Of a DNA stretch of 64,000 nucleotides, positions 123 through 38,841 are shown one piece after another. The notes under the pieces were generated by a model. The model was not told the DNA's origin. It did not search any database and was given only the letters and a program-made list of their open reading frames with translations. The translations under genes were made by a program, and so were the position numbers. Source of the stretch: Hyphochytrium catenoides (Eukaryota > Protista > Hyphochytriomycota); NCBI GenBank assembly GCA_900088475.1, contig FLMG01000284.1:1-64000 (forward strand). Reading direction: 5' to 3'. Every line of letters begins with the position of its first letter. Positions within the stretch are counted from its first letter, which is position 1.

Positions 123-3100
123 CCCGGATGGCCGGAAAGCATCCATCTGCTGTCCAGTCTCCTGCGCTGGGCAACCTCATACGACGCGATGATTGAGAGC
201 TGCGGCAGAATCTTAAGAGTAGCTCTAACGCTTTGTAGACCCACTTCTTCTCCTCCAGAAGGGTTCAGAGAAAGGACAGCAACAGAAGAGGAGAGAGGTC
301 TGTGCCTCTCGTTCTATTCCTCTTGTCAGCACTTCGTCTCTCGTTCTCTGTTTCCTTCCTCTTCGCTCTTTAGCATACCTCGCAGGTCTGTCTCTCTGCA
401 CAGACTCACTTTCTCTCTCTCTCAGCACACGTGTTCTCCCTCTCTTCTTTCTTTCTCTTTCTGTCACAAGCAACACTTTCTTCTTCTCTCCCTGTGTATA
501 CATATAATGCCTGTTCTGGACTCGTCGCCCACTTTCTTTTATCTCCTTGGCTGTTTCTTTTATTGCTTGCGCTCTTCAAGCTCTGCTTTATTTGTTCTCT
601 TATGCCTTTCCTCGCTTGCTTGCAGATTCACTGAAGTGGCTCAATCTCTCTCTCTCTCTCTCTCTCTCTCCTCTCACACAATCAATCCATCGACATATCC
701 CTCTCAATTGTCTCTCTCTTTCTCTTCTCTCGTTCTCTCCCTGCATCTCCCTCTTAATGGTTCTCCCAGTTCTCCAGGTCCTCCTCGCTTTATTAAGAGC
801 AAAAGACGCTGATTTCCAAGAGTTCCTCCTTCAAGGAGGAGTCTTCCAGCCCTTTGAAGAGATCTGGCAGACAGAGCTGCGCCATAATACCGCAGAAGAA
901 CAGCGGCGAAGCGAGAGCGAGAGAGAGACCAAGCAAGGATCCCTAAGAGACAAGCCGCGGAGTTCACTGACGACGGGATCCTTTTCTCATTCCTCTTCTT
1001 CCCTAATGTCTCCTTCCTTCTGCGAGGCAGAACGAAAGGGCAAGGAAGCACATCAGGAGCTAAGAAAGCTCTTCTTTGTCATTGCGATGGAAAAGCTCTC
1101 CGCAAACGCAGGGTTTCGGCTGTACATCAGCAGTAGCACCAAGGAAGAGATGATGGATTATGTCTTCAGAGAAGCCGTGGAGCTCTCCGCCCGGCAGGAG
1201 GAGGAGGAAGGAGCAGAAGAAAGTGAAGAGGAGACGGAAGATGACACAGAAAGAGAAGAAGAGAGAGAAGAGAAGACAGAGAGGAGAAGGAAGAGGGAGA
1301 AAGGAGAGCCCAGACGGCAACAATCACCGTCCGAAGAAACGCATCTGGAGCTCCATAAACAGCGGAGAAGAGAGACAGTGACTCACGCTCTCATCTTCTT
1401 CTCGCAGATGCTGCACGACGAGAGGCTCTCTCTCTCTGCCCGTTACCTCTCGCCTGGGCTAATCAGATACTTATCGCGGCTCTGTGTCACCTCCTTCAAT
1501 GTGAAAGACAGAGTAACAGCCGCCGACATTCTCTCCCACGCAGCCGAAGAATGTCTTTCTCTGGGCACTTCTCACGCACTCCTGGAAGCTGCAATGTTTC
1601 TCTTAGAAGGAAAGGAACTCTCTCTCCGGACAGCTGCTCTTCGACTTCTCTCTTCTCTCAGCAAATCCAGGCAAGATGGCGTATACCTTAGATTGGCGCT
1701 CACAGAGTTCCTGGCCACGACTTTACAGCTCACAACAGAAGTACGGGAAGTGGCAAGGAAAGGAGATACGTGGGACGAGGACGAAAGAGAGGAGACAATC
1801 GAGGGAGAGAAAGCAGAGACTGCTATGAGGGTGCTGCTGCCCATTATCCCCGGCCTGAAGGATGAAGTATGGCGCTTCCCCTTAGAAGGCTGGTTTGAGA
1901 GACAACAGGGAGAGAAACGTGTGCTTCTCTCTCTCCGGGAGAGACAAAATCGAATCTTCTGCCGCGTGGCAATACCTCCCAAGGAAGGATCAACAAAGGG
2001 AGCGCGGCCAAAAAAGAGGACGAGACGTGAGCGTGAACCAAATCAGCAGCAGCATAGAGAAAAGCCAGGGCAAATCGAGGAAGGGGAGCGCTATCACACC
2101 CTAGAAATAGAGAAGACGGAGGATGTCCTCGAGGTGCTGGAGAGAAGAAACCTACGTCTCCTCGTTCAGAAAGAGACAGAGGAGAGTCACGACCAGAAGA
2201 AAGGCGGCAGGAGAGGAGCGTTTTTCCTTTCTCTCCTTCGGGCAGCCACCACCTCATCTCCCTCCGACTTATCCCCTTCTCCTTCTTCTCCTTCTCCCTC
2301 TCCCGCTCCTCCGACACACAGCGATGGCCCCTCGAGTCCAAAGCGCTCTACTACGCATCTTCTCTCTTTCCTAAGACCACCATCCAGATCAGGACAGTTA
2401 GGAGAGGAGACGATCTCTGGGGCCCCAGAAAAAGTCGAAGTTAGGGCAAAAGTGGACGAGATCCGTCCGAAGTGGTCCGCCAGCCCAGCCAAGAGGGAGA
2501 AAATAGACTCTCAGGCTGAGTCTGGCCATGCTCTGACGGCTAGAGAGACCGAGACTAGGGAGGCGGCTGCCCGGGCACCGGAATTACCGGCCAAACTAGA
2601 GCGTGAAGAGCACGAAGACAGGAAGAGGGAAGACAGAGCAGAAGAGAAAGCCGCAAGGGAGAAGCCTAAGTCGGCGGAGACAGAGTTAAAAAGAGGAGAG
2701 AGCACTGGAGAAGAGAAAGGAGGAGAAGAAAAGGAGGGCACAGAGGAAGCAAAGCCAAGGAAGGAGGTGCCCAGGATGGAAGAAGTAGAAATCAAGCCGA
2801 GAGGAGAGAGCCCTCCTCCTCCGCTCACTGTCATTGATGCTCCTCCCAGCAGATGCTGGTGCTGCTTCTGTCTCTCTTCGCTTTTGAAGAGGCTCCAACT
2901 CTGCTGCCGAAGAAGTAAAGCGGCAGAGGGAGGACCTGTCCTCCTTGTGGCACAAGCAGGACACCAAGGAAGAGAGGGAGGAGGACAGCTGAGCAAAAGC
3001 AAGGCAGAGGAAGCTTCAGGGGAAGAGGAACAGCAGACGAAGGAGGAGAAAGACGAAGTTCGCAGTCCAACTGTNNNNNNNNNNNNNNACGGAAAGGATG

Positions 3101-5298
3101 AAGAAGAGGAAGAGGAACAAAAGAAGAGAGAGGAAGAAAAAGAGAATGAAGGAGAGAGACAGAAGGAAAGACCTGATCAGAAGGAAGCAGATCTTCAGCC
3201 AGAAACAGAGCCGCAAAGAGAAACTGTTATCTCCTCTTCTTCCCCTCTGATCGTCCCTCCCTCCCTCAGCGGCCTCCTCAGCATGGAGACAGTGGCAGAA
3301 GAAAGCGAGAAGAACGAAGAAGAGGAAGAGAAGACTGGGAGCAAACACTCAGGAGAGGCCTTGTTACGAGACAAGAGCAAGAGCATCTTCTCCCTCAGAT
3401 TTGGCAGAAGAAGAGAGAAGGAGAAAGCTGCTCGTCTCTCCTTGGCTGTCCCCCAGGATCCCTCTCTACCTCTCTCTTCAGACAAATCTCCCCAGAAATT
3501 GTCCTCTTCAGTCTCTCTCGCTCAGCCAACGGCCCAGCCTCGTAGAGCTAGGCAGAGTCTTCGCTTATGGATCCCAGGAAGAAAGCAAAGCCTGATCCCA
3601 GATTTCCCGCAGAATGGAGAAGAGAGAGAAAAAGAGAGAAAGAGACTTTCCTCACTGAGAGGTAAGAGAGGAAGCCAGACGCGAAGGAGAGGCTCTCCTA
3701 GAAGAAGCTTTGAGCCGCTCTCTCCTCTCTCCTCTTCCTGTCCGCCACCATCATCATCATCTGACTCTTCGTACGTACATCCTGAAATTCTGCAAGAGAG
3801 ACAAGAAGAAGAAGGAGACGATGCTCTTCATCCTTCTCTTCTTGAAGATTATCTCACCAAGATGACGGAGAAGAGACACAAGGAGAGCGCTTTCTTTCTC
3901 CGTCTAACGGAGACAGAAAGAGAGGATCTCATGGAACAGGATGACCTGGGAATGTATGGAGAATACGGAGAAGGCGTGAACCGACGGAGTGTTCTCTCTC
4001 ATCTAATCTTTCTCTTTTCCTCTCCTCACCCAGAGGCGAGGTTTCTCTCTCTCCTGACAGTGTTCAATCTGCTGACATCAGAGCTAGCAGATCATCTCAT
4101 TCTCTCTTCTCCAGCATCTCCTTCTCCTTCTTCCCCGTCAAGCTCTCGTTCTCCTTCTTTTTCCCAGCGTTCCTCCCCAGGACGGTCACCTTCTCCTCCT
4201 CGACCTCGCCTTCTCTCTTCAACTCTTCGTTCTCTCTCTCCATCTTCTCGTCCTTCCTCTCCTCCTCTTCGCCCGACCACCTCAGTCTCGAACAAGTCTT
4301 CATCCTCTCGAAACTTCCTTTTCTTTCAGCGGCAGGACGCTCCTCCCACTCGTGAGACAGAAAGAAGCAGCGGAAGAGAAGGAGAGGAGACTGGGGCCAG
4401 TCCAAAGAAGAGAGAAGACAGAGAGGCTGCAGAAGAGAGGAATGAAGACGGCCGTCCTTCCACCGCAACCACCACCACTTCATTTGTCTCTGCTACCTCC
4501 CAAGGAAAGAGTGAGAGTAAGGAAGAAGAAGAGCAACGGAAGAGAGAGAGTGGATCGTTTCTCTTCGGAATCGGTGACCCAGGTTAGAGTTGCATGTACT
4601 GATCGTCCTGTGAATGGCTCTTCTCTTTCTCTCTCTCTCTTCCCCGTTCTTACCCCTTTTCTCTCCTCCCTCTCCACTCTTCCTGATCCCTCTTGGGCAG
4701 GAACCGATGTCTATAGGACTGAGAGCAGTCGGGAGAGAAAGCCTCTGGAGCCCTCGTTCCATACTTGTCCCCGCTTTCTCTTTCTCCAAAGAGACGGAAA
4801 GACGTCTTCCTATCGCATCCACAAGCTTCTCGTCAGGGCTGGCGCTGTCCTCCCTCTCGTCCTAGCAGAGCAACAATGTGGTTCTTCTTCTCTCTCCTTC
4901 CCAGTCTCTCTCTCTCATTCTCTCTCTCTTCCAGGTTCATCACCGTCGTCTTCCTCTTCGTCCAGCTACGAGCCCCTTATAGGGCAGCTGGCGGAGGCGA
5001 TCATCAGTATCATTGTTAGCCTTAGCAGGGATTATGAGATCTACTTTGAGGTTGCGCGACGATCTTGTCAGAACAGAGAGAAGAGAAGGCAGAAGATGGT
5101 AGAGGATGAGGCCAAGCAAGCGGCAAGGGAGAGAGAGAGAAGAGAGCTCATGGGACGGTACAACCCTGCCGAGCTCCTTCGGTATAGAAAGTACTTTGAC
5201 ATGGTAAAGAGCTTTGAAAGCTACGGTGCCTCTTCTTTCAAGCTACAGTGCCTCGACTTTCTCTTGCACTCTCAGTCCCTCTCTTTCTCCCTCTCTCT

Positions 5299-30900: not shown

Positions 30901-33900
30901 ATGGCTGCAGTTTACTCGCCGCTGCTCGCAGCTCTGCAACGCGCTAGGGCAAATCTCTGTCTGGGCTGGGCCTGTGGCTCCATCTGTCATCACTTTCTGG
31001 AGGCTCCACTGCTTCTGAAGTTGAAGCTGCGATCAAAACCTCCACAACCCCAACAGGTTCTTAGGTCAGATACCCCTCTACCTCTAGGGTGCAAACCTCT
31101 TAATCCTATGATAAATGCTATTAAGATTTTGGTAACGCAACCCCGCCCCCATATGGTGACCGACACTGCCCCTTATGCAAAAGAGATGCCTGGGGGGTGC
31201 CTGGAGGCTAGATCCGAAGCCCTTGACCTTCACTCGGCGAGTGCTGTGAGGACAATGCCTCCTCCTCCTTCCCGTTGTCGGACAGGTGGCGACCGATGAG
31301 CTGCAGGACAGCAGGACCTTCAGGAGCTGCACTCATCCTTGGTCGCCTTGAGAGGCTCCCCTGCACCTTCAGAGACTTCGGGCTGGTGCTGTCTCCACTT
31401 ACTGTTTGACTTGTGTCGGTCACGGACACACGAACTGGTGTTGCCCAGAGAAGACTCTGGGTCTTGATACGGACGGATGCAGTTAGGTGGACAAGAGTTG
31501 TCTAGTTTGAGCAGAAGATAGACAAGTCGCGCTATTCCGTCTTGGGATAGGGCTTTAAGGAGTCATGGACCACGTACCAACTGTATCTGGAGAGGAGCAT
31601 TCTTCCTCCTCTTTCCATGACGAGGCCGTTATCGCAATGGACCCAGTGACGATCACAGGCCTAGCCCATGCTGAAAGCCCACATGTAACCGAGGATGACA
31701 TGAAGCTTCTGCTAGAGCTGGCTTGCAGCAGAGTGCCTCGCTTTGACATTCCGGAAGAAATGCGGCAACGGGTGCACTACCTGGTTTCTCAGTGCATCCA
31801 GGGCAAAATTAAGTTCGTAAGTTTCTTCTGAACCAGATCCAGTGATGCCAGAGCGGTGTTTGTTACCCTCGGCCTCGATCCGTCTCCATTCCAGCTGCTC
31901 AGGGCTGTCGCTTTTTTCATACCGTTCGTTCAGTAGCCTTGGTGGTCGGCCCCTTGGTTGTTTATTATGCTGCTCTGTTCTGACGCCTATCCATCCCTCC
32001 TACCGCCTGGTCTTCAGGAACCTCGGCTCACCTTCCGCCTTATAAAGATCTACAAAGTAGACCTGAATGGCATGATGGAGGATGTGATTGCCTACATCCG
32101 CACACAGTTGGAAGCTGGGGCAGTGAACGTTGCCTTGGCTCTTATCGAGTACTATAACTTGAGGAAGGTCTTTCCTCCTGCCTCTCTCCTGCCTCTCGTG
32201 CTCTATCAAAAAGAAGGCAACATGACAGAGCAATTGATCACTGTGAGCAGGAAGGGAGCGGGTGAGTGCAAGTGCAGATATCCAAGAAGAGAGGAACATC
32301 GCTAGCGTAGGAGCTACGTCATTGCTGGCTTCTCTCTATCTATGCTCTCTTTGAAGTTGCCACTGCGTGAATATGCTCTCTTTCCATCCTTCGTACGGTG
32401 CATTTAGCCCTCAGGGGAGGCTTGGATCAAAACATCCCTAGTCACTGCCGTGCGCTCATTGTCTCATACATCCCATAGAGGAGTCTGGTACCATTGAGGA
32501 CAAAGAGGAGCATCTCGCGCTTGTCCGACAAGTCATCGAGGAGGCTCTCCAAAACGGGAAGTTCAAGCTGGTCAGAATTGCTCTCTATCTTTGAGGTCTT
32601 CTCAACTGAGTGCTCCACGACCAATGGAGGCGTCTCCAATCCCTGAGCCCATCACCATTTTCCAGAGCAACTGACCTGTGAGATCTCTAGGCTGTTAAAC
32701 TTGTCCGAACCTATGGCCTGCATGAGGAATATCCTAACACAGGTAATGGGGACACAGGGTAAAGGCTGATAGGGCAGTTCAGAGAAGGAGGTGCGAATTT
32801 TTCTCCCTGGCCAGAGGCTAGAACTTTTGAGGTAGTCAAAGGCAGAACTGACTTCCTTTCCAGAGACTTGGTTCAAGGAAGGGACTTTAAAGAAGCTCTG
32901 CAGGACTAGAAAATGGGGTGTGGCGGTCTCCTTTGTCGGTGGTGACCGCCGGCTTCAGGTAGTGTGGACTCTTGAAGTTTGATTCTCTCAAGTCTTACGG
33001 CTCCCAGCCTAATGATTGCATCTCCCTGCTCAGCTCGCCCTGGTGCAGCAGCTCTTATGGGCAGGAGAATACAAACAGGCAATGGCTTTAAGAGCGAGGT
33101 CCGGCAGCTTCGTGCTACCTAACGATACGCCGATACTGGCCTTCTGATCAATACATTTCATTTGGTGGACTGGCTCCTTCTTCACTAATATACTTCCGAA
33201 CCTCTCATTCTCCTGCGAACCCGTCTCTCAGATTCTCTCTAGAGGACGACGTAGAAGCTGTCGATGACAACGTATTGGAGCAGCAGGTAGGCCCGATTTC
33301 TTCAAATTATACGGGCATTGTCTCACTATGTAATCCATTTAGATGTGCTCTTCTTGCAAATCTGCTGTCACTGATGATCCTTGCGGGTCATAAGCGCCTT
33401 GCTACTCTTAGGAAATCCTTTATATGTCAGTTTATTTTCTGATGGCGCCTTCTGCTGTATCGCCTTGTCACCTTTAGCACTTCCCCATGTACCAACAGGA
33501 ACTGAGGTTAAAGATGAGATATTTAGACATTACGAGCCTGCACGGAAGTCCGATGCTGTTCGTAGACAGCAAGTCAAGTCTGGATAAGGCTAAAGCTGTG
33601 TTTCAAGCGCTTGTTCAGGGTAAGGGTGGTCTTAGACCTCTTGAATCTAGAAAGCGCGAAAGAAAGAAGGGCAGGGTACGAAGCGAATTAAAGACTTAGA
33701 AGTTCAACAGTGTACACGCGTCGAAGTGTTCATCATCCAGAGCTCGATGTATGAGGAAAAAGAAAGGGACGTAAACAATAGAACAGAGAATCATCAACTC
33801 TAGTCCTTCCTTTGACAAACTTCCTTTCAGACTCTCATAGCAAACATGAAGCAAAGCTGAAAGCGCGGAACGAAAACCTTGAAGCGTCAGGAGGTCTTCT

Positions 33901-36900
33901 CGCGATACCCACCATTGGCTTAGATGTTGAGTGGAAGCCCAACCTTTACGCTGACAGAAAGCAGCCAAAAGCAAGCCTTCTCCAGATAGCCACAAGAAGT
34001 CAAGCGGTCATTTTTGATCTGCTTGCGCTCATGGAAAGTGATAGCTTGAAGGTAGAGAGCTGTTATTAGACTCCCAGATTTACCAGAGCTGCTGTCTATG
34101 CGCCCTGCACGTTCTGGAAGTCTATTATTTGCTAGCTGAAGTAAGAAGGGACACGTGATTGTAGTTAACACTGACTTCTATGACTGTCGCCATTGCTGCT
34201 CTCATCTGGGCTGCTATATCTACCAGGAGGAGACAGGGGCGCTGTTCAGTTCGCTATTGATGTCTCCCGATGTTATAAAATTAGGGTTCGGTTTCCCGCA
34301 TGATCTTAAAGGTGCCTGATGCTTCCTGCGTGGTACTTTTCTAGCTTGCGCCCTCTTTTATCCGTCTCCATTCTAGAGTGATCTTTGGTCCATACCTTTC
34401 AGCAAGTCTAATCTTCGGAGTAGTCCTTCGCAGCTCCTATCCTGGCTCCCATTGCTTCTCTGAGATGCATAGTCTGCTCGAGGTAGGCCAGAAGATTTGC
34501 GTATAAGAGAAAGAGAAATGCGAGACAGAAGGAGAGCATCTGTGTATACATCTCATTGGAGGAGGTCATTGGCCTAAAAGTACCTGATAGAGAGAACACG
34601 GAGTTTTTTGCAGAAGTAAACCTTGTCTTCGTGGCGCAGGTGAAGCGCCTAGCAGAAGTATTCTATGGCACTTCTAAGGTCACTAGTCTAACAAAACTGT
34701 GTGAGACAGTGCTGGGGAAGCCATTGAACAAGGTAAGTTTGTTCTGGGGAACAGAATCGCCCTTAAAGATGGTGGCCAAAGGAGGGAGAGGACTTAAGCA
34801 CGTTCATTCTTAGATCTCATGTCTTTTTGTCTATCTGCTACCATAGGAGGAGCAAATGTCCAACTGGGAGCAGCGGCCCTTGTCAGATTCTCAACTGAGG
34901 TATGAAGAGTGTGCGTAAATAAGTTCGTCACGGCTTTTGCTATCTGTCTGTCTAGGCGCACAAGGAGAATATTCAAATTCTGAGATTAGTGATTAGTTCG
35001 CGAGACTCTTGGACCTGACAAACACTGTGTTTGCTGGCTGTCCCAGATATGCCGCTCTCGATGCCCTCTGTCTCCCTCATATCTTCGATAGACTGCTAGA
35101 GCTAGGAACTGCGAAGTGGACTCACTATCTCCAGTCGATCAGCGTTCACCCTGTAGACTTACCCGAACGTAGGTTTCCTTGGCCCCTAAGAATCTATTTT
35201 CCACTGTTCCTAAAGCATATGTTGTTCCTAGAAGTGATGTTCATTAGTCGGGTCAGTGCTGGAACTCTACGTTTCATTATCTTCCCCCATGTTATATGAA
35301 GGACTGACCATCAATTTCCTGGATATTGACTCTATCTTCCTTGATTCAGCACCAGTAACGTCACCGGTAGGCTCCATATAAGATCAGAGGCTCTCTTTGA
35401 GCTTCTTTTACCCGGGTTTCCGATGTTTTCGAGAGAGTATAGCCATCGGTCTCATGCCCTTGTCTCCTATCACCTTCACGTCAATTCGCTAGCTGTCCAG
35501 TGAAGATGTTGCGGCAGCTATTCGCACGTCAGCGGTTCCTCATATTGCGTTAATAGAGTATGTGGAGGAAGGAGAACAAGTTGATAAGAGCAATCTGGCC
35601 AGAACTCCCTCCATGCTGTGCAAGACGATTGCACTGATAGCAGCAGGTTTCGTCCTTCCCCTTTTCTCAGCTCTCCTATAGCTCGTCTACCCTTACCTTC
35701 ACGCAGCTCCCCAAAACAGTTGGCATTTTTGACCAGTCACACTCCTCTAGGTGAGCCACTAGTGGCAGTCGTTCCAGCAGAAGAGGTTATTGACCTCATC
35801 CGGATTGCTCAGCTCACGGAGGCGTCTCGAAAGAAAGTACGCCTGGCTCACTCCAGAGAGTGCTTTGAGGTCAGCTGCAAGAACTCCTTTCTATTGGCTC
35901 AGTTTGCTCTTCTAATTTTCCATTCGCTTTCGCTTTTCTATGGCTTCAGTTGGATTTACCCGCATACCTTGCCTTCTAAGCTTGAAACTTACTGCCCCTT
36001 TTCAACCTCTTTGTAAAACTGCGCAGATCTTTGGCTACTACCCGGGCTCCATGCCGCCAGTCGGACATCGGATGAAATATCTTACCTTTGTGGATAGGTA
36101 GGCACTAATAAAATTGAGCTTTCACAGAAATTCGTGTTAAACGCGTTGGGGTTGTCCGCAAGGTTCATGCAATTTTAGAATCTTCTCTTATAGAGTAATA
36201 TCTTTGTTCTCAGAGCCTGTTGGTTGACTGTCTCTCCTTTAGTCAGCTGGCAGATGCACCAGAGCTTCTGACAGGAGGAGGCACACCACAGACGTTGCTT
36301 CGCACTTCAGGGCGAGAACTAGTACTTTTATGCCAGGCAGAGGTTCACAGTATCACCAAGAGACAAAACGAAAGTTCGGAGGAGAAGCAGGCTCTGTCTA
36401 ATCACGCCTGGGAAGAGGCAGGTAAGGACAGACGCAACGGGTCTTTTGTGACGAAAGGAAACAACCTAGTGAGAGAATGTTCCAGGCGAAGAATTTCCTC
36501 TATAGGTAGCAAGGACTCTATTGCTGCTATCTTCTCTAAGATCACGATGTCCAGATAGCACTCTCGTTGGGAATAATTGAAGCAAAGCTTCCGCCCACTT
36601 CATCTTTCTAAGATCCACCCTTCAGGTGCTCCAGGAGAGTTGCGCTTTCTGGCGGACGATATGATGGGCAGACTCTGCCGCTGGCTGCGAGTCATGGGTG
36701 TCGATGTGGTTCTCTGGAAACAGGGAGAGACCCAGGATAGAGCAGACATTTTAAGGCTGGTGAGTGCAGGGTAGAACTCGACGGATATCATTATAACTAG
36801 AGGAACAACTCATTGGAGGACAGCTAAGCTCGAGAGTGTGAAGAGACGAAAGGCCACAAGTATAGAAGAGCTGTGGAGGTGGATGCTAAAGGTTAAAACT

Positions 36901-37970
36901 GTGTACAGGGAGGGTCTGTCTAAGTGTCGTTTTCCTCTTCCAGGCTGAGGAAGAGAAACGGATTATACTGACAAGAGATCAGAAACTTTCTAATCGGAGA
37001 GACGCCGGTGCCTGTTACGTCATCCACTGCAATGATATCAAGGAGCAATTTGATGATGTAAGACCCAATTGAGAAGCTCAGGAGAGCACCAAAAGAATCT
37101 GAACCGTAGCACATGCAGTCTCAACGAAGAAGTCAGTAGGAGATACCAGGTGCAAACCTCTTATTCATGAGAGTCTCTCCTTCTCCATTATACCTAGGTG
37201 ACAAAGCACTTCCAGATCGCTTTCCGAGAGGATGAGTTCATGTCGCGGTCAGTCTATCTCTCCCCTACCTCAGCCCATCTCTCTTGCTTTACCTCTACCA
37301 GACAAGCTCCTGTGGACGTCACGAATGCCCTTGCTCAGGGCCAAAGCTCGGCTAGATAAACCCTCTAACACTACCTCTCCAACTTCATCTTATGGAGTCC
37401 TATATGGCTATCTGACGTGTACGATCTGGCAGATGCGGGAAGTGTAACGGGAAAGGCTATCAGAGGATCTCAATTGAAGACGTGAAGTCGAGAGAGGAGG
37501 TGAGCCGGGAGGCTAAAGGACTTTGGTCCGTCCCTGCGTTGTTTCCCCTTCTTGCTTTTACGCATTGGTTCTATATGATAGTGCTCCATTCATTCTCATA
37601 GTCTACGTCTCTGGGTTGGGGTTTTGTTCGTCCTCTGCAAATTTCTCTTCTGCTCAGCTCTAGCATTCTTAAGCGGCATCCACCCTAGAGTCAGACTGAT
37701 CCCGGAGTCTTGTCTATGCAGGTGAAGGAGAAAGTGCTGGAGATTGTTGATGAGTTTTATGAGTGCATCCATTGCCATCAGGTATATTGGGAAGGTCCTA
37801 AGTTCATGGATGCCCGCTCTCGTTTTTATGAGATGTTTGAGATCATCCGAGCGAGAGGGGACTTGCAAGACAAGAGTGAGGATGAGGACCGTGTCCCAGG
37901 AGAGAACGAAAGCCAGAATAGTATAGGCAACGAAGAGGAGAAGAGCCAAGCAGCAGGAGAGTGTGGTTAG
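30901..37970 (+). CDS. EXD3: MUT-7/EXD3-family DEDDy 3'-5' exoribonuclease with internal YbaK/aminoacyl-tRNA-deacylase-like domain and C-terminal Mut7-C (PIN-like + Zn ribbon) domain
   Basis: ExoI IGLDVEWKP...ASLLQIAT; ExoII KLGFGFPHDLK; ExoIII SLTKLCETVLGKPLNK/EEQMSNWEQRPLSDSQLR/YAALDALCL. YbaK: LCKTIAL...VRLA...IFGYYPGSMPPVGH...TGGGTP. Mut7-C: RFLADDMMGRLCRWLRVMGVD...RIILTRD...SRCGKCNG...FYECIHCHQVYWEG. The start codon is uncertain (between ~30741 and 31565). Confidence 0.9.
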
Positions 37971-38450
37971 GATGCAACTTATGTCTATTCAACTCCAAAG
38001 CAACAGTCAGAATCCTCTGGCTCAGTACAACATAGTATTAACAAAGAATCAGGCGGAGAGAGGCAGTGGCCAGTATGGCATCTAGGCAAGCACGCCCTAA
38101 GAGCGAGTAATGGACAGATGTCCACCAGATGATCACTGGGATGGACTCATGCTACGCCCTCTCCTCTCTGATTCCTCTGCATGGGACCATCTCCAAGGTC
38201 AATGGGCAGCGACCCTTATGACCCGCAGTGGTAATGCGCGATAGAAGGCTTCCCTAGAACCTGTCTTTCTGTTATAGACGATGACAATTGTCCAGATTAA
38301 GCAAGAACGAGAAGGGGCCACAGTAACCCTTGTCTGGCCTTTCTGACGTTTGCTTCGTAGGAATCGATCAAATAGATGACAGCGACCAGGCCAGGCAATA
38401 ACAGCAACCAACCAAGCCGAGACGTGAACGACCTAACAGGGAGAGAATAG

Positions 38451-38650
38451 CAAGCAGTGACCGCAAGCGGAGACAGCAAGTAAACAAGCAATGACAGCCA
38501 CTGCCCAAGCGAAGACACCAACTGGGCAAGCAATGACGGCCACTGCCCAAGCGAAGACACCAACTGGGCAAGCAATGACAGCCACTGACTAAGCGGAGAC
38601 AGCACATGAGCCAGCAATGACAGCGACGGACCAAGCCGGTGACCGCAAGT
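38451..38650. repeat. 42-bp minisatellite (2 near-perfect plus ~3 degenerate units)
   Basis: Unit caagcaatgacRgccactgcccaagcgaagacaccaactggg in tandem, with degenerate flanking copies. Confidence 0.85.
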
Positions 38651-38841
38651 AGCCAAGCACGAGTTGACAAGAAGACTGCTGTGCCAGGGCAGAAGCTAGG
38701 GAGTTGATCTCAATGCAAAAACAGGCAATATGGCTCTTCACCTTTGTGAAATCCCCCAGGACTCCTCTGAATCCTTCAACAACTGCTGAAAGAATCAAAG
38801 GCTCCATAGTAAAGATGACTTGAAAGATACCACTGAAAGCA

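Follow-up and report, generated by a model that had tools for sequence, protein, structure and literature searches.

A predicted Mut-7/EXD3-type exoribonuclease gene of Hyphochytrium catenoides with a ProXp-x-like domain between its exonuclease and Mut7-C domains

Does the tRNA-editing domain that can be read in a contig of Hyphochytrium catenoides belong to a Mut-7-type exoribonuclease and, if so, what might it do there? The window analyzed here comprises positions 1 to 64,000 of contig FLMG01000284.1 (assembly GCA_900088475.1, forward strand). An earlier note, made from the sequence of this window, had proposed that a YbaK domain at 35350-36421 lies between the exonuclease and Mut7-C domains of a MUT-7/EXD3 protein. 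Judging from the exon sequences, the gene most likely encodes a Mut-7/EXD3-type 3′-5′ exoribonuclease with a ProXp-x-like domain between the DEDDy exonuclease domain and Mut7-C. Taken as a whole, the locus is quite likely best explained as a three-domain Mut-7 gene of a known family, in which the insert would probably dock tRNA or tRNA-like 3′ ends and, if its lysine works, deacylate them before they are trimmed.

The window is eukaryotic, with short GT-AG introns, and the peptides quoted in the earlier note were recovered in the order and frames given there from a three-frame translation of positions 33300-38100. We could assemble a chain of 16 exons on the plus strand (33831-37970; Table 1) in which each exon is preceded by AG and followed by GT, the limits having been set from the sequence and checked by script. 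The introns are 79-222 nt long, the phases close at every junction, and there are no in-frame stops. The limits proposed for the insert proved exact: a 17-nt linker exon begins at 35350, and the fourth YbaK-like exon ends at 36421. The gene itself covers at least 32018-37970 on the plus strand, and matches of Mut-7-like proteins at 32018-32979 place its start upstream of the mapped exons and of 32857 (tblastn; residues 377-471 of protein P0010 at 32018-32248, P0007 at 32691-32738, and residues 69-111 of P0003 at 32857-32979). That the exonuclease, an INS/YbaK-superfamily domain and Mut7-C occur together in one gene, as had been claimed, is borne out both by this in-frame exon chain and by the same domain order in a single reading frame of an environmental relative, locus L019, described below.

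The first mapped exon of the exonuclease domain (ExoI) gave a weak match to Pfam DNA_pol_A_exo1 (PF01612; E 0.021), its score lying below the cutoff because the exon is only a fragment of the domain. The same exon is 43-48% identical to the PF01612 exonuclease proteins P0003-P0006. All five DEDDy catalytic residues, whose presence had been noted earlier, can be located (D and E in GLDVEW, D in PHDLK, Y and D in YAALDA), and homologues align at these positions. The three middle exonuclease exons matched P0005, P0007-P0010 and 30 metagenome loci in tblastn searches. On the downstream side, two exons scored above the Pfam gathering cutoff of 23.3 bits for Mut7-C (PF01927): Mut7-C exon 1 (36628-36759; 28.2 bits, E 2.3e-6) and the last exon (37722-37967; 26.1 bits, E 1e-5). 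The conserved Asp and the four-Cys zinc ribbon of Mut7-C are readable (LADD, ILTRD, CGKC, CIHC), and Mut7-C exons 2-4 matched the Mut7-C region of L019 (tblastn, E 4e-7 and 1e-5). The gene in the window therefore combines the two domains by which Mut-7/EXD3 proteins are recognized, a DEDDy exonuclease domain and Mut7-C.

The inserted domain was searched one exon at a time, as four exons of 51, 39, 23 and 59 residues. In the PDB, the sole family-level match of exon 4 was ProXp-x 2CX5 (residues 122-154 of 158, E 0.05), the remainder being designs derived from 2CX5, and a phmmer search of the same database returned nothing for exons 1-3. Exon 3 had a sole, weak NCBIfam match, to YbaK_EbsC (TIGR00011, positions 93-113 of 152, E 0.19). 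Two adjacent exons thus gave two separate weak matches, to the same superfamily and at consecutive positions. Comparison with the environmental relatives extended the similarity upstream: exon 2 matched the tRNA_edit region of L019 (tblastn E 0.002; z score against shuffled sequences 5.7; 0/500 shuffles) and the two halves of the equivalent region of locus L049 (z 3.7 and 3.0), and exon 3 was 73-77% identical to L019 and L049 (z 11.6). The hhalign comparisons of exons 1 and 2 with the ProXp-x alignment were not significant, and a search of the ESM Atlas with exon 1 gave no usable match.

To place the insert within its superfamily, we used a bacterial set of seven intact proteins (Thermus, Pelotalea, Geomonas, Rokubacteria) that was fetched by a degenerate DNA pattern built from residues common to exon 4 and 2CX5; the four of these that were scanned with Pfam all matched tRNA_edit (1e-24 to 1e-30). 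When the seven-protein ProXp-x profile was run unfiltered against the 2592 stop-to-stop fragments of the window, the exon 4 fragment ranked first (E 3e-5, positions 123-159) and the exon 3 fragment second (E 0.09, positions 99-120). Scored exon by exon, exon 4 reached 22.1 bits (124-159), exon 3 11.3 bits (100-120) and exon 2 1.5 bits, and exon 1 gave no alignment. The corresponding shuffle z scores were 18, 8.9, 0.1 and 0.5 for exons 4, 3, 2 and 1, the exon 4 score being partly circular and its z inflated, since the pattern used to fetch the bacterial proteins came from that exon, and the exon 3 figure being free of this circularity. Exon 2 was collinear with the profile, not significantly so. 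Added singly to the bacterial alignment, the four exons fell in order, with nearly no overlap, across the whole domain. Significant collinear similarity to members of the INS/YbaK superfamily (PF04073) was found through exons 3 and 4 for ProXp-x and through exons 2 and 3 for L019 and L049.

The YbaK label given to the insert in the earlier note holds at the level of the INS/YbaK superfamily and not for YbaK proper, since by its best PDB matches (2CX5) the insert appears closest to ProXp-x among the INS branches. YbaK proper was ruled out as the subfamily on the ground that the solved matches are ProXp-x only. ProXp-x proteins are free-standing and single-domain, and the insert is internal to a eukaryotic multi-domain protein, so we file it as ProXp-x-like and not as ProXp-x. 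It is of complete length, at about 155 residues, and contains no insertions. As to the hallmark residues that had been listed for it, the PPVGH loop and GGGTP are evident in the sequences of exons 3 and 4, whereas the KT lysine is placed by position and by alignment by eye. In that alignment the K of LCKTIAL in exon 1 is nearly gapless with VVKS of L019 and L049 and with IVKS of ProXp-x, giving a [VC]K[ST] motif; MAFFT gives a second lysine candidate, in QVDKS.

A metagenome scan with the exonuclease-domain alignment yielded 34 loci, only two of which also contained Mut7-C. These two, L019 (MDSW01155324.1, 8420-12136) and L049 (Ga0315905_10031343, 669-4032), are environmental eukaryotic contigs, GC-rich at 0.70-0.71, and both carry a YbaK-like domain between the exonuclease and Mut7-C. 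The L019 locus has all three Pfam domains within a single unbroken, intron-less reading frame of 1239 residues (DNA_pol_A_exo1, 1.3e-13; tRNA_edit, 1.3e-11, 45.1 bits against a cutoff of 25.5; Mut7-C, 2.2e-34). In L049, tRNA_edit (36.3 bits, above the cutoff) and the start of Mut7-C share one reading-frame fragment. The L019 domain had 2CX5 as its best solved match (E 0.001), followed by 1WDV. Besides the domain order, the two relatives have VRLA..EC..FGY.PG..PP.G in common with exons 2 and 3 of the window, and a 3-residue insertion and the GY.PG motif set all three sequences apart from bacterial ProXp-x. Residues on either side of the exon 2/3 junction of the window are spaced as in L019 and L049, where the sequence runs on without a break, and the L019 reading frame has a linker of similar length at the position of the 17-nt exon. 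Of the three copies, that of the window is, by its motifs, the most ProXp-x-like.

The other 32 metagenome loci (L016-L018 and L020-L048), which have an LG[KR]PL[DN]K motif, showed no Mut7-C or YbaK match in the DNA available, several of them ending soon after the matched region; they may represent a different kind of DEDDy exonuclease gene. Further searches for fused homologues gave six all-library matches of the ExoI exon, none of them fused (the contigs of P0004 and P0006 end before any downstream domain), and only two-domain or exonuclease-only proteins in word-index searches with the exon 4 open reading frame and with the exonuclease regions of P0003 and P0008. Exon 4 matched no relative in a metagenome scan and nothing in a tblastn search of plasmids. 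The top two all-library matches of the ExoI exon (33833-34051) were P0001 (1173 residues; Pfam, DUF1331 only) and P0002 (5820 residues). Residues 14-51 of the exon align with these proteins in 9 and 5 separate stretches, respectively, and the matches may reflect a repeat unrelated to the exonuclease.

The three-module design is not new. A survey of PIN domains (Matelska et al. 2017, PMC5499597) mentions it, in a single sentence, for Saprolegnia and Aphanomyces. The ESM Atlas also contains a cluster of 74 eukaryotic proteins, mostly from Oomycota, with Mut7-C in 100%, DNA_pol_A_exo1 in 99% and tRNA_edit in 97% of its members. Compared through that statement and the cluster summary, the oomycete proteins unite the same DNA_pol_A_exo1, tRNA_edit and Mut7-C domains in one protein; the cluster representative has 1181 residues, whereas the window protein is estimated at about 800 and its gene is split into at least 16 exons. 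In full-text literature searches we found no paper studying the fusion, the Mut-7 literature that we consulted treats the family as exonuclease plus Mut7-C, and, according to a 2024 review of tRNA editing (PMC11295145), the INS superfamily consists, apart from the ProRS insertion, of single-domain proteins. The sequence comparisons give good support to the view that the gene belongs to a family that is on record but little noticed and as yet unstudied, and whose range is wider than the oomycetes.

Comparison with better-known systems shows where the window protein departs from each of them. MUT-7 of C. elegans, human EXD3 and plant Mut-7 likewise have a DEDDy exonuclease followed by Mut7-C with a zinc ribbon, as well as an N-terminal helical region, but they lack tRNA_edit between the domains, and P0008 has a 30-residue linker there. 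The statement in the earlier note that the animal proteins are without YbaK agrees with the ESM Atlas, in which the chordate clusters, and the plant ones too, carry only the two usual domains. ProXp-x TTHA1699 of Thermus thermophilus (2CX5), labelled a putative trans-editing enzyme, is the best and nearly the only solved match of exon 4 and of the L019 domain; it has the same length as the insert and is collinear with it, with PPVGH and GGTP kept. ProXp-x is a free-standing single-domain protein (PMC11295145), whereas the insert is an internal module of a nuclease, and its N-terminal half is too diverged to score. Editing domains fused to a partner that acts on the same tRNA are represented by the ProXp-ala/ProRS fusions of stramenopiles, alveolates, rhizarians and kinetoplastids and by plant ProXp-ala with its C-terminal domain (PMC11295145). 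In the window, by contrast, the partner is a 3′-5′ exoribonuclease of a small-RNA pathway and not a synthetase or a dimerization domain, and the editing branch appears ProXp-x-like, not ProXp-ala.

An aminoacyl ester at the 3′ end blocks a 3′ exonuclease, and Mut7-C, a PIN-like domain that includes a zinc ribbon, binds RNA. One can therefore picture the ProXp-x-like module docking onto a tRNA acceptor end or onto some tRNA-like 3′ end. Provided that its lysine is functional, the insert would hydrolyze the aminoacyl ester that would otherwise stop the exonuclease, and the DEDDy site next door, helped by RNA binding through Mut7-C, could then trim the freed 3′ end. Such a deacylate-then-trim mechanism is plausible for the window protein, given its domain order; to our knowledge, this activity is undescribed for any Mut-7 or INS-superfamily protein. 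Whether it might apply to the family as a whole is more doubtful, and we offer only tentatively the proposal that these enzymes take the amino acid off 3′ ends that are charged, mischarged or tRNA-like and go on to remove the CCA, so that RNA silencing or transposon control in stramenopiles would be coupled to the charging state of tRNAs or to fragments derived from them. The further link to antiviral defence that the earlier note proposed is likewise conjectural. ProXp-x itself, of which 2CX5 is a structure, acts as a deacylase on Abu-tRNA and to a lesser degree on Ala-tRNAPro, and prefers A73 (PMC11295145). For MUT7-C, RNA binding has been reported, together with a requirement for this domain in the nuclease activity of MUT-7 (bioRxiv 10.1101/2023.12.20.572533).

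Several points weigh against a working deacylase joined to a nuclease. The evidence is sequence throughout, deacylation, tRNA binding and coupling of the active sites being predictions, and all exon junctions are likewise deduced from the genomic sequence, above all the 17-nt linker exon. This is the least certain junction of the gene model, placed by splice signals and phase, with no homology support. None of the four YbaK-like exons gave a Pfam tRNA_edit (PF04073) match when searched singly, at 23-59 residues each. The circularity of the exon 4 profile score has been noted above. Exon 1 and its lysine were significant in no test, whether by Pfam, PDB, ESM Atlas, hhalign, profile shuffles or comparison with L019. 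In the relatives, moreover, the His of the PPxGH loop is lost in L019, where it is Thr, and GGTP is lost in both L019 (AGAP) and L049 (AGME), so that catalysis may not be conserved across the family.

These motif losses make a binding-only role of the insert a serious rival. The insert would then be a catalytically dead reader, a YbaK fold that recognizes the CCA or acceptor end, or some other 3′ end, and steers the exonuclease without deacylation. The long low-complexity insertions that L019 and L049 carry inside the domain, after the lysine strand, are consistent with such a role, as is the divergence of the lysine-bearing exon 1. However, the window copy has neither these insertions nor the loss of GGTP; it keeps K[ST] by position, the PPVGH loop and GGGTP, and is in these respects closer to working ProXp-x than its relatives are. 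We consider a dead reader possible but doubtful.

It is less probable, and in our view unlikely, that the protein combines an ordinary Mut-7 nuclease with a trans-editing domain that acts freely, with no channelling between the two sites. Single-domain INS-superfamily proteins do act alone on mischarged tRNA, and the known fusions, ProXp-ala/ProRS and the plant C-terminal domain, serve tRNA binding and not a second chemistry (PMC11295145). The insert, however, lies between two domains that must cooperate on RNA, and its conservation in at least oomycetes, the genome of the window and two environmental eukaryotes points, weakly, to a shared substrate. Least probable of all is an artefact of the gene model, in which an exonuclease gene ends near 35170-35300 and a separate YbaK/Mut7-C gene follows, or the main mRNA leaves out the YbaK exons: the link does hang on the 17-nt exon, and the ExoIII reading frame can stay open as far as a stop at 35297-35299, but the tail so added is hydrophobic and, by eye, unconserved, the exonuclease and Mut7-C share one protein as the family norm, L019 has all three domains in one frame, and a separate gene would lose the first ~37 residues of YbaK-like exon 1, whose only Met stands just before the lysine motif.

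YbaK-like exon 1 in fact begins directly after an in-frame stop, which supplies its AG, and has no usable start codon; it must therefore be joined by splicing to an exon further upstream. For these reasons, and because the phases fit the flanking exons, we ruled out an independent YbaK gene nested in the locus. A pseudogene was also ruled out, all exons being open and the motifs kept.

The preferred reading, a three-domain Mut-7 gene with a ProXp-x-like insert, gives the locus its interest, as the fusion suggests that aminoacylated tRNA 3′ ends may be linked, as substrates, to an exonuclease of the small-RNA pathway. The architecture itself is not new, and the value of the window lies in a well-annotated member of the family, in the assignment of its insert to a ProXp-x-like subfamily and in evidence that the design occurs beyond oomycetes. 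Being compact and without insertions, and with the ProXp-x motifs intact, the window copy is a good candidate for expression and assay.

Table 1. Features of the predicted three-domain gene, with positions in the window and the evidence for each
Feature	Position	Strand	Evidence
N-terminal Mut-7-type region (several exons, approximate limits)	32018-32979	+	tblastn of Mut-7-like proteins
ExoI exon of the DEDDy 3′-5′ exonuclease domain (GLDVEW)	33831-34051	+	Pfam, homologue identity, AG/GT borders
ExoII exon (GFGFPHDLK)	34227-34311	+	Frame, motif, alignment to the GFG..D column of homologues, splice check
Exonuclease middle exons (SYPG, VLGKPLNK, W..RPL motifs)	34421-34482, 34562-34732, 34847-34899	+	tblastn, splice check
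ExoIII exon (YAALDA; catalytic Tyr and Asp)	35047-35168	+	Sequence reading, match to P0008 residues 495-510, splice check
17-nt linker exon from exonuclease to YbaK-like exons	35350-35366	+	AG/GTAGG borders; phase closes the frame
YbaK-like exon 1, N-terminal third of the domain (candidate catalytic Lys in LCKTIAL)	35493-35646	+	Place, length, splice borders
YbaK-like exon 2	35751-35869	+	Matches to the L019 tRNA_edit region and the L049 equivalent
YbaK-like exon 3, substrate loop GYYPGSMPPVGH	36027-36097	+	NCBIfam, ProXp-x profile, shuffles, identity to L019 and L049
YbaK-like exon 4 (PELLTGGGTP...), C-terminal part of the domain and acidic linker	36243-36421	+	PDB 2CX5, ProXp-x profile
Mut7-C exon 1 (RFLADDMMGRLCRWLR)	36626-36759	+	Pfam Mut7-C, 68% identity to L049
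Mut7-C exons 2-4 (ILTRD; first CxxC of the zinc ribbon)	36944-37057, 37198-37247, 37433-37499	+	tblastn to L019, splice check
Last exon: second CxxC (CIHCHQVYW), acidic tail, stop at 37968-37970	37722-37970	+	Pfam Mut7-C, match to P0008 residues 679-710

Two further observations concern the surroundings of these exons. Retention of the intron after ExoIII would extend the frame over 35170-35299, adding ~43 hydrophobic codons up to the stop at 35297-35299, and the product would then have the exonuclease alone. Some 500 bp beyond the stop codon of the gene, a 42-bp tandem repeat (38464-38659; 4.6 copies, 81% matches, also readable with a period of 21) is read through by open reading frames on both strands as short peptide repeats.

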